In this document: positions 29,068-38,903 of the stretch, in pieces
How positions within the stretch are numbered: position 1 is the stretch's first letter
How the letters are laid out: every line of letters starts with the position of its first letter
Source of the DNA: Macrostomum lignano
Lineage: Eukaryota
DNA length: 64,000 nucleotides
Assembly (NCBI GenBank): GCA_002269645.1
Contig: NIVC01001300.1
Location: forward strand, 124,001 to 188,000
Reading direction: 5' to 3'
Notes under the pieces: generated by a model
The model's database searches: none
What the model was told of the DNA's origin: nothing
The model's input: the letters and a program-made list of their open reading frames with translations, nothing else
Program-made: the position numbers and the translations under genes

Positions 29068-29326
29068 TACTACTACTACGTACTACTACTACTACTACTA
29101 CTACTACTACTACTACTACTACTACTACTACTACTACTACTACTACTACTACTACTACTACTACTACTACTACTACTACTACTACTACTACTACTACTAC
29201 TACTACTACTACTACTACTACTACTACTACTACTACTACTACTACTACTACTACTACTACTACTACTACTACTACTACTACTACTACTACTACTACTACT
29301 ACTACTACTACTACTACTACTACTAC
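29068..29326. repeat. (TAC)n microsatellite, ~86 units, left flank of the pPolB element
   Basis: Directly visible; ends in phase at the TIR. Confidence 0.98.
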
Positions 29327-29444
29327 ACTACGTAGCACGCAGAAACTGCAGGGTTTTCAGATGTTTTGACGCAAAAAACGCAAATTATACTACTATCTGA
29401 AAAATGAAGTAAGTAGTATACAAAAACGCTATCCTAAGCGTGAT
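29327..29444 (+). repeat. Left terminal inverted repeat (~118 bp), beginning ACTACGTAGCACGCAGAAACTGCAGGG
   Basis: Reverse complement of 38699-38815. The outer ~94 bp differ only by one A-run indel; the inner ~24 bp carry several mismatches. Confidence 0.95.
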
Positions 29445-29977
29445 GTGGCAATATGTAGTCGTAATAATCCATGTGCTCATATTAATTCCATGTACAATAA
29501 TCCCTATCTATCTCAAATTGTACATTAATTCCATGTACATTAATCCCTAAATATCTCAAATTGTACATTAATTCCATGTACATTAATCCATATCTCAAAT
29601 TGTCCATCCCCAATTCTATATGTACAGTGTCATCCCCAGCGCGCGCACCAAAATTACATGTACAATACTACATGTACGCAGAGGCGAGAATTACTAATCT
29701 CATCTACTACCAAATGAGTCAACTAACAGTGTAGCGTACATCATGTATAAGTATTTACAATGAAGATATATTTACATTTAATCAGTAGCATATTACAGGA
29801 ATCGAGACATGTACACCATCACCAGCAAATAGAATATACAGAAAATTTTACATTGTTTTTTCAATAATTTTCTCTTCATAAATGATTTTAAACAGGTTTG
29901 ACATGTAAAATATGTACAACAATAAATAGATTTTACTCAGTCAAATTTAACACGATATCTATTAAGCAAGGGCCACA

Positions 29978-36037: not shown

Positions 36038-38698
36038 CTAAAATATCCACAAAGAGTAATGAAGTGACGGAGATCCTCTGTCACAAGCCAAAACAGAGAG
36101 ACAGAGTTTTCTACTTCTGTTTACGTAATGTTTAGGGATGGACCTGGGGTTATAGGGACAGAGAGTCAGTTATGGCATTTACGCGGTAGTAAAGAATTGC
36201 CTTGGTGAGGCTGGGGTAGGTGTTGTGCTGTTCTCTCCATATTGACGAACATTAATAGTCCTGGGTTGAATTTTGATATGGCTAGAATGTATGTAGTGGA
36301 GAATCTTTGAATTGAAGGGTGATTCAACATGCAAAGTATGCAACAAAACTGATTCAGTGCATCTAAAAGAGGCTGTTGGGAGCTTCGGAACTGAGAATAA
36401 CGTTTAAAATAGCATCAATGGCATGATTTAGTAATCGAAATCAATCGAACACTGAAAACTTTAAGTTTAATAGCAGACTGTGTTTTTAGCCCCAATTTTT
36501 ACAGTGTCTATACAATATTTCCCCAGCTTCTTGGGCAATATACATGCCTATTTGAATGATTAAACAGCATTTGTGATGATTTATTAGCTAACATTATTAT
36601 CTCTATTGATAAAATGACAGATTTCGATCCATAAAGTAAGCATTTTAACGTTAAAAATCGAAAAAATGAGGAAAACTCGTGGTTTTCGTGAAAAAGTTTG
36701 CATTTCTAATAAATTTTTACCATTAATCAACCATTTCTTAGGCTGGGCTGGCTTGTGGACTTCCGTGTGGGATCATTCTTGCTTCGAAGCCGTCTCAAGT
36801 AAAGTTGAAACGGCATTTGGGTAAATTAACTGTTGAAGTTTCCAGTGATGAAATTACTGATTTTGATCAACAAAGTCTAACTTTTAACGTTAAAATTAAA
36901 GAAACTGTAGAAAACTCGCCTTTTATGAAATGTGCTTTTTACGAGCTACTAATTTAGCTTTTAATAAACTTGGACGGAATTCCAACTTGGAGAGGTCAGT
37001 GGGTGATTCATTCCTGCTTCGAGCGATCGAACTTTCATAGAGTCTGAAAGCTTGAAGTGAGAGGGTAGTGGAAGCGATAGAATTGGCATAGCAGCACGTT
37101 TTTGGGCGGGTGGACTTCACTACTTCTAGTATACCGCATTGGTCATAGTGCCAAAGTATTTCTGTGACAAAACACATCTATAGAATTCAGTCTCGGAATT
37201 GAATGCAGAGGAGACACTGATTCATAGGCTGTGTACATTGACAGATGCAGGGGTATTGGGTCGATGCAGTTGGAGGTTGACTCGGATTTGCTCAGATTCG
37301 TGGGGTTGATGTGTGCATTGAAAGTTAGTTTCTTGCTAACTGGGGCGGCATGGATGACGTAATTGGAGAAGAGGGGTTTTGCTGAATGAGGTTTAATATA
37401 GGGTCCGTGCTGTGAAAAGATCTGTTTGAACACTGAAATGGAGAGAGGGGTTGGAATTCCTTGGCATTTAGAAGGGTGCAGAGAGAAACAGGGACAAGTG
37501 GTTCAATTCGATTTGCTATATAGGGGTCTGCTGAGGGGTGGATGTTTTCGAACAAGTCTTGGGGTTGAATTTTGAATATGGCCGGAGATAAAGGGTGATT
37601 CAACATGCAACATAATTAATTCCATAGTGCACACCAGCGTCAGTGGCATATTTTGCGGATTACAGCGCGACAAGGGTCTTGTATCATCCGCACTGTGATA
37701 CGAAGCATATAAAACATTGCTTTCACAGTCTTGAATTTAGAGGCCGACTAAATAAATCGTATACGTATCATATATATACGTCTTTTGAAAACTTTTTTGA
37801 CTCGGGGAGAGGGGTTGGGAATGACGTAATTGTCTCGGAGTGGCGACGAGGGCTGAATTCTAGAGGGATGAAGTATAAAAGGAGTGGATATAACAGTGTG
37901 GACAGCAATTTTTGGCTAACTCATGCACCTCCTCCGCCAATTTTGGGGATGGGCGGCGGTTTCTGCGTACACTGTTTGCTTTTTGAGGGTCAGCGGAATA
38001 TGAAGAGTTAATTCTTGGATGTGCGGCCGCTTTGCAAATTTTGGGTATAATTTGGGTGGGTGGGCGCTTCTGCATGCTCTCTGTTTCAACTATTGAAAAT
38101 AGTTGAAAATAAACATGATATCAGCTTTTTCAATATAAAAATGTAAAATTATGAATGTAATCTTTTTCAGTAAGAATCTCGACTTGTAAACTCTACTAAT
38201 GGTAGTATGGCGTAATCAGTTACATTTGGTTTTGAGTAATTCACATATAAATATGCATATATGACGTGTTCTGTAAAACTTGGATGTTAGTTGACTCATT
38301 TGGTAGTAGGTGAGATTGTACAGTTGGCGCGCACACACCGACCCACCTCTGCGCATATACTGTGCTGTACACGTAACAATTAGTGTTTCGAGTTGTACAT
38401 ATAATCTTGTGGGGTTGACGATTCAAATACGCAGAGCGGGGGCCGTCGTGTAGATTGGGGATTAATGTACATAATGTACTGTACATATAAAAATTGTCAT
38501 AGAAGTAGATTAATGCGCAAGTGTACATATAGAAGGACTGTACAAGTTGACAATACACATGTAGAATTGGGATAGACATGGAAGTAGACAATGTACATAT
38601 ACAATTTGAGATAGATAGGGATTAATGCAGTACATGGGATTAATGTACACATATGAGTACATGGATTAATGTACATATACGAGTACATATTAAAGTAT

Positions 38699-38815
38699 AT
38701 CACGCTTAGGGTATCGTTTTCATATACTACTTACTTCATTTTCAGATAGTAGTATAATTTGCGTTTTTTGCGTCAAAACATCTGAAAACCCTGCAGTTTC
38801 TGCGTGCTACGTAGT
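38699..38815 (-). repeat. Right terminal inverted repeat, ending CTGCGTGCTACGTAGT
   Basis: Matches the left TIR as described. Confidence 0.95.
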
Positions 38816-38903
38816 TACTACTACTACTACTACTACTACTACTACTACTACTACTACTACTACTACTACTACTACTACTACTACTATTACTACTACTACT
38901 ACT
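38816..38903. repeat. (TAC)n microsatellite, ~29 units, right flank of the pPolB element
   Basis: Directly visible; resumes TAC phase immediately after the TIR. Confidence 0.97.

Follow-up and report, generated by a model that had tools for sequence, protein, structure and literature searches.

The 64-kb stretch of Macrostomum lignano DNA analysed here (contig NIVC01001300.1, positions 124,001 to 188,000; hereafter the window) contains a 9,489-bp element inserted in a (TAC)n microsatellite. The element is a polymerase-only derivative of the Maverick/Polinton elements. It is fairly likely to have entered the microsatellite by an ordinary integrase-type insertion, the target-site duplication (TSD) of which has been masked by the repeat. 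If so, the locus is a clean example of a 6-bp duplication vanishing in a trinucleotide repeat. An earlier note on this DNA had placed a protein-primed element of the Polinton/Maverick type, bounded by long inverted repeats, inside a pre-existing direct microsatellite. The analysis upholds this view; coordinates are given in Table 1.

At the left side, the junction reads ...TACTACTAC|ACTACGTAGCACGCAG... between positions 29326|29327, and at the right side it reads ...CTGCGTGCTACGTAGT|TACTACTAC... between 38815|38816. The two flanking tracts comprise ~86 TAC units on the left and ~29 on the right; Tandem Repeats Finder (TRF) counts 88 copies for the left tract, with 5 nt of the element included. 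Both tracts read TAC on the plus strand and are therefore in direct orientation. The left tract closes on a full unit and the right tract opens with a full unit, so the phase of the repeat is kept. These junctions agree with the earlier claim of an in-phase, direct-orientation insertion into (TAC)n. Degenerate units are found only at the outer edges of the two tracts, while pure units adjoin the element, the pattern to be expected if one microsatellite of ~115 units (~350 bp) had been split in its core. Apart from these two tracts, no (TAC)n has been found in the window.

Since the phase is kept at both junctions, any TSD is concealed by the repeat, as had been proposed: duplications of 0, 3, 6 or 9 bp are permitted, and those of 4, 5, 7 or 8 bp are ruled out. 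Within a repeat of 3-bp units, a duplication of 6 bp cannot shift the phase, and phase preservation is thus the canonical expectation. The inverted repeat and the flanking tracts are far above chance; a kept phase, taken by itself, would be expected a priori in 1 of 3 cases. A seamless microhomology join has been ruled out, as the left junction, TAC|AC|TAC, is one base out of register.

The terminal inverted repeats define the element precisely. In an ungapped comparison, the two arms (29327-29403 and 38739-38815) are 100% identical over 77 nt. When gaps are allowed, identity is complete over the first 73 nt, ~90% identity with indels extends to ~200 nt, and patchy identity continues to ~400 nt in the left arm and ~530 nt in the right arm. 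The length of the inverted repeat (73-77 nt where perfect, recognisable to ~400-530 nt) falls within the Polinton criterion of 100-1,500 bp. The 37-nt terminus has only two sites within the window, which are the two ends of the element, and 0 are expected from shuffles. A peptide read outward from the terminal repeat gave one spurious match, a translated satellite, among 1.84 billion representatives.

The left end opens with the 5 nt ACTAC and the right end closes with the 5 nt GTAGT, and the element ends read ACTACG.../...CGTAGT. The dinucleotide AC occupies positions 1-2 and 4-5, while a trinucleotide reiteration (ACT-ACG) holds at only 5 of 6 positions. The G of ACT-ACG is common to both ends and therefore did not arise after the insertion. 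The jump-back priming on ACT-ACG suggested in the earlier note is a hypothesis, and a dinucleotide step could conceivably be used for priming at such ends. The AC...GT ends had been called non-canonical; they are not unprecedented, as the Mavericks of Monopterus albus end in 5'-(AC)3A//T(GT)3-3' (PMC8097293). The M. albus elements share the AC start and the GT finish. On the other hand, AC is repeated three times there, whereas here AC-T-AC-G, the 5-of-6 trinucleotide reiteration, is followed by a palindrome. This palindrome, CTACGTAG, forms a repeat in direct as well as in inverted orientation. Its interpretation as an 8-bp TSD left by a hAT- or P-like transposon was rejected, since an odd interrupted empty site would be needed, no DDE transposase is present and the gene content is of the Maverick type.

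The one recognisable gene of the element encodes a protein-primed family-B polymerase. In the unspliced locus, open reading frames (ORFs) of 221, 853 and 145 aa lie in three frames, and the 853-aa ORF (30807-33368, minus strand) is that of a polymerase of this family (PF03175). GT-AG intervals of 83, 76 and 78 nt connect the pieces into one open frame of 1,297 aa. A further GT-AG interval, 81 nt long and in frame, interrupts DVV|SLYPT, and removal of all four leaves ~1,270 aa with 0 stops and 0 frameshifts. The GC content of the three frame-changing intervals is 0.28-0.36 versus 0.56-0.61 in the adjoining exons. Two of the four predicted introns fall within catalytic motifs, and removal of the intervals rejoins DVVSLYPT, KIFLNSLWGKF and YCDTDS, as given by the window's own residues. 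The peptides across the spliced junctions are also present in paralogous M. lignano gene models. A polymerase broken into three ORFs was considered and has been replaced by this intron model. As judged from the sequence, the intron-bearing gene is probably intact under the predicted splicing. The predicted introns suggest a long nuclear residence, and spliceosomal-type introns in the Maverick polymerase gene of a flatworm are a point of modest interest.

The spliced protein matches PF03175 with an E-value of 8.6e-34 and the phi29 polymerase (1xhx) with an E-value of 0.007. Database searches with the 853-aa ORF gave 71 matches. M. lignano gene models make up 40 of these, at 35-96% identity, with the six best being 80-96% identical, and the others are Maverick-type polymerases from insects, fish and metagenomes. 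Exact-protein look-ups of one paralogue and of the window's 221-aa ORF returned no record. Several of the M. lignano models (P0006, P0007, P0012, P0018 and P0030) are chimeric, being joined to reprolysin, disintegrin, zinc-finger or retrotransposon-like segments or to antisense polymerase translations. The annotation of this polymerase family in the public proteome of M. lignano is unreliable. The N-terminal 230 aa of the polymerase and the ~130-aa cysteine-rich stretch that follows (33443-34108 and the start of 30807-33368, minus strand) are conserved among the M. lignano paralogues and have no match in Pfam, NCBIfam or the PDB. This part could be a terminal-protein or zinc-binding part.

A further feature of the polymerase is a 150-aa insert, which is conserved in relatives. 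Single-sequence searches with the insert did not detect a relationship to Vsr, but a profile built from 15 homologous segments matches the E. coli Vsr structures 1vsr, 1cw0 and 1odg with an E-value of ~4e-5. The AlphaFold model of the insert has a pLDDT of 88.5, and its top Foldseek matches in the PDB are 1cw0 and 1vsr (probability 1.00, TM ~0.5). Polymerases of the pPolB2 type with a VSR insert have been described as a Polinton subgroup from a marine nematode (Trissonchulus) and molluscs (PMC10748475). The window polymerase is of this pPolB2 VSR-insert type. It shares with that subgroup the domain insertion and a marine invertebrate host; those elements, unlike the present one, are full Polintons with an integrase. 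The VSR-like insert is also found in the polymerases of fish Mavericks (L004, 10001-13936; L005, 10001-13948), of Hermetia illucens (L007, 10001-14137) and of the firefly Photinus pyralis (L002, 10001-16324). Its presence in fish and insect relatives means that it is not a marker of the marine group alone, and VSR-insert polymerases are more widely distributed than published. At the Photinus locus, long inverted repeats (102-1006 / 14777-15751; up to 382 nt, 98%) connect a pogo-like DDE region with the interior of the polymerase model, which suggests a nested or rearranged transposon.

Five Maverick-type relatives that bear both an integrase and a capsid gene have been used for comparison: a metagenome contig (L001), two fish loci (L004 and L005), a further contig (L006) and the Hermetia illucens locus (L007). 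Their polymerases are 28-33% identical to that of the window, and their genes include an rve integrase (with chromodomain matches in L005 and L006), an A32-like ATPase and a capsid protein. Both ends are visible in L004, L005 and L007, which have inverted repeats of 0.7-1 kb and perfect 6-bp duplications, and all three sit in non-repeat targets. The two fish elements have the ends AGAGAG.../...CTCTCT and the duplications GATGCA (L004) and TGTGTC (L005), while the fly element has the ends AGTAGT.../...ACTACT and the duplication AACTAG. Likewise, published Mavericks have perfect 6-bp duplications and ends of the types (AGT)2//(ACT)2 and (AG)3//(CT)3, the former being the commonest Maverick end motif (PMC8097293). 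These motifs have been interpreted as reiterations used for jumping back in protein-primed replication (PMC8097293). In each of the two fish loci (L004, 5277 / 23289; L005, 6356 / 23040), the terminal (AG)n run is longer by exactly one unit at one end of the copy than at the other, which is a direct trace of replication slippage at the ends.

Apart from the polymerase, the gene complement of these relatives has not been found in the flatworm element. Profile hidden Markov models (HMMs) were built for seven Maverick gene families, each conserved in at least three of the five relatives and including the integrase and the major capsid protein. Searched against the element, the seven models gave nothing significant (best independent E-value, i-E, 0.02 at 2.8 bits), and the integrase model, built from the five relatives, gave a best i-E of 6. 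With the relatives' proteins, including the integrases, tblastn produced no match in the element, and neither capsid proteins nor a packaging ATPase nor a protease were detected in it by HMMs and protein search. None of the best 120 of 1,223 profile matches for capsid genes is from M. lignano; these come from fish and reptiles.

The right-hand 4.2 kb of the element has no recognisable gene. Its first ~280 bp (to ~34388) match untranslated sequence in the 5' part of paralogous polymerase models. Apart from this 5' leader, a concatenated-ORF query for the region found no homologue among 5.8 billion proteins. Six-frame scans of 34100-38740 contained no rve integrase or other Pfam family, and no lost Maverick genes were recovered within 34.1-38.7 kb from ORF scans or from the extra parts of the chimeric polymerase models. 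Rfam and tRNA scans of the same interval were empty. The 119-bp tandem duplication in this region has a weak match to the histone 3' stem-loop (21.1 bits against a gathering threshold of 34, E 0.054), which is probably due to chance.

As usually defined (PMC5499653), a Polinton encodes both a polymerase and a retrovirus-like integrase. By this definition, a copy without an integrase is not an autonomous Polinton, and the polymerase-only derivative is probably non-autonomous. At 9,489 bp it is also below the 13-25 kb reported for Polintons (PMC10748475). It resembles the animal Mavericks/Polintons, such as L004, L005 and L007, in having a protein-primed polymerase near one end, inverted repeats of several hundred bp, a short motif at the very ends (here reiterated at 5 of 6 positions), flanks compatible with a 6-bp duplication and the VSR-like polymerase insert. 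It differs from them in length (9.5 kb versus ~17 kb, or 13-25 kb), in the lack of an integrase, capsid, ATPase and protease, in its ACTACG... ends, as opposed to (AGT)2 or (AG)3, and in its microsatellite target. Vertebrate Mavericks are ~17 kb long and the intact ones are without introns (PMC8097293), whereas four introns are predicted in the polymerase gene here.

Based on these observations, we propose that a Maverick/Polinton-derived element, which has kept its long inverted repeats and an apparently intact VSR-insert polymerase and has no integrase or capsid module, was integrated precisely, without the loss of a single base at either end, among the pure central units of a pre-existing host TAC microsatellite of ~115 units. 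The most likely agent would be a retrovirus-like integrase supplied in trans by another element. The staggered cut of such an integrase would have led to a duplication of a multiple of 3 bp, presumably the canonical 6, leaving the half-tracts in phase and the TSD hidden. The landing in a microsatellite would most likely reflect the abundance of tandem repeats in the genome, and recognition of TAC need not apply. A regional bias may have been added, in that chromodomain integrases could be drawn toward repeat-rich chromatin; chromodomains occur in the relatives, and the neighbourhood is dense in satellites.

Several points weigh against this proposal. An integrase gene was found neither in the element nor in the rest of the window, and no autonomous partner has been identified. 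The size of the TSD is not readable in the repeat, and the relatives used for comparison are distant (28-32% polymerase identity). Moreover, the host part of the window measures 54.5 kb, and (TAC)n accounts for ~0.65% of it; uniform random landing in this motif is therefore unlikely, and it is the very motif class that matches the element's own ends.

On the other hand, the load of long tandem arrays in the window is extreme (Table 1): tandem repeats as a whole cover ~12.6 kb of the host part (23%, arrays merged), of which microsatellites with a period of 6 or less account for ~2.7 kb (~5% of the host part). For the M. lignano genome, simple and tandem repeats have been put at 15% (PMC5730564). 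The split tract, at ~350 bp, is typical of the window's other microsatellites, which measure 354-675 bp: (TTAG)n 675, (ATCT)n 662, (CAGT)n 562 and (AG)n 354 bp. Landing in some tandem repeat is unremarkable, and landing in this particular motif is one event noticed after the fact.

The same figures bear on the strongest alternative, which we regard as rather unlikely: the flatworm family would prefer (TAC)n/(GTA)n targets that match its own ACTAC...GTAGT ends, either through recognition by its machinery or through pairing of the ends. The rarity of (TAC)n in the host DNA fits such homing. The outermost 5 nt of each end, too, can be read within the flanking repeat or its complement, and of all 1,024 5-mers just 6 are contained in either strand of (TAC)n. 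Microsatellites are also established targets of other mobile elements, such as the non-long-terminal-repeat elements of the R1 clade, which insert in specific microsatellites. Among DNA transposons, the Mutator-like MuTAnT elements are described in PMC4486113 as inserting in TA repeats. Like these, the present element lies within a microsatellite that hides its duplication; unlike the microsatellite-targeting families, in which hundreds of copies sit in one motif, it is one copy with other transposition machinery and no demonstrated preference.

The resemblance between ends and target may, however, have a simpler source. The earlier note had drawn attention to termini that resemble TAC/GTA and to the palindrome. 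Both are present, but the resemblance says little about targeting: (AGT)2//(ACT)2, the commonest end motif of Mavericks regardless of target, belongs to the same trinucleotide class as the TAC/GTA repeat, and many Mavericks should therefore have microsatellite-like ends irrespective of where they insert. The Hermetia relative, with ends of exactly this class, sits in non-repeat DNA, and all three distant relatives with visible ends lie in ordinary DNA with 6-bp duplications. Homing is further disfavoured by the left junction, which is one base out of register, by the lack of an integrase or other targeting protein in the copy, and by its being a single post hoc insertion in DNA of which 23% is tandem repeat. 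A single copy is insufficient to show that the element seeks TAC repeats. If a TAC preference were true, the family would provide the first case of a Maverick/Polinton lineage whose target is defined by sequence, and it would tie the terminal reiteration of protein-primed replication to the choice of target.

Entry without an integrase is improbable in our judgement. In this scenario, a linear copy would have been captured at a double-strand break in a long, fragile microsatellite, or an excised circle carrying a TAC tract would have recombined with a chromosomal TAC tract. No integrase was detected in the element, the in-phase flanks also fit a 0-bp duplication from a blunt join, and the circle route automatically yields direct, in-phase tracts; the direct-repeat flanks of ~90 and ~260 bp are sufficient for homologous recombination. 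However, no complementary base is missing at either end, an outcome seldom seen at both junctions after break repair, and a free form that is circular or carries a TAC tract is not known. In addition, viral, metagenome and prokaryote genome collections, where M. lignano is not expected, do not contain the terminal 27-mer. Somewhat less probable still is a further reading, in which M. lignano would harbour a lineage of integrase-less, intron-bearing, polymerase-only Mavericks (~40 proteome models) that reside in the nucleus and home to (TAC)n/(GTA)n tracts resembling their terminal trinucleotide motif, with host recombination or the VSR-type nuclease of the polymerase itself taking the place of an integrase.

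It is very hard to credit that the TAC arrays were made by the element, through runaway terminal reiteration in protein-primed replication or through expansion of TACTAC after insertion. The left array has the orientation of the element's 5' ACTAC motif, and the one-unit difference between the ends of the fish elements indicates that terminal reiterations vary. Such reiterations would, however, be inverted between the two ends, whereas both arrays read TAC on the plus strand. Growth from 2 to 86 and 29 units is implausible with a 73-nt core that is still identical, and the degenerate outer units fit one old host array. An assembly artefact, in which unrelated (TAC)n-adjacent sequences were merged through the repeat, deserves equally little credence: simple repeats and duplicated chromosomes do hamper M. 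lignano assemblies, and 180 Mb is duplicated in the DV1 assembly (PMC5730564), but each terminus-TAC junction is local and independent of long-range joining, and the two arms belong together with the polymerase to a single coherent element.

Table 1. Coordinates of the element, its flanking microsatellite and the other tandem arrays of the window
Feature	Position	Strand	Remarks
Inserted element, 9,489 bp	29327-38815	.	Bounded by the outermost complementary bases of the two arms (A 29327, T 38815)
Left half of host (TAC)n microsatellite	29068-29326	+	4 TAC units, one inserted G, 82 perfect units
Right half of host (TAC)n microsatellite	38816-38908	+	23 perfect units, one TAT, 5 units, TAG TAG
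Left terminal inverted repeat	29327-29730	+	Perfect core 29327-29399/29403, then ~90% with indels, patchy to ~29730
Right terminal inverted repeat	38285-38815	-	Perfect core 38739-38815, degenerate inward to ~38285
Terminal 8-bp palindrome CTACGTAG	29328-29335 and 38807-38814	.	Read at both ends
43-bp subterminal tandem repeat	29481-29595		Inside left terminal inverted repeat
26-bp tandem repeat	38629-38697		Inside right terminal inverted repeat
Protein-primed family-B polymerase gene	29978-34108	-	ATG at 34108, stop at 29978, four-intron model
VSR-like nuclease domain within polymerase	31497-31949	-	150 aa, profile and fold match
Right-hand 4.2 kb	34109-38284	.	No recognisable gene
119-bp tandem duplication	34859-35096		93% identity, inside element
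GCT-rich tract	35199-35481		Inside element
Tandem array, (TTAG)n	831-1505		
Tandem array, 23-bp satellite	3738-5779		
Tandem array, (ATCT)165	8503-9164		
Tandem array, 20-bp unit	9566-10732		
Tandem array, 18-bp unit	12151-12784		
Tandem array, (AG)177	16433-16786		
Tandem array, 21-bp unit	17160-18175		
Tandem array, (CAGT)140	24904-25465		
Tandem arrays, 21-bp unit	54474-55151 and 62322-63633		

The other genes of the window are ordinary animal genes, which include those for a ZP domain, a GT4 glycosyltransferase, a short-chain dehydrogenase, EGF and a G-protein-coupled receptor. A short interstitial CTAACC run (2864-2919), the complement of a TTAGGG-type telomere repeat, lies beside the (TTAG)n array.

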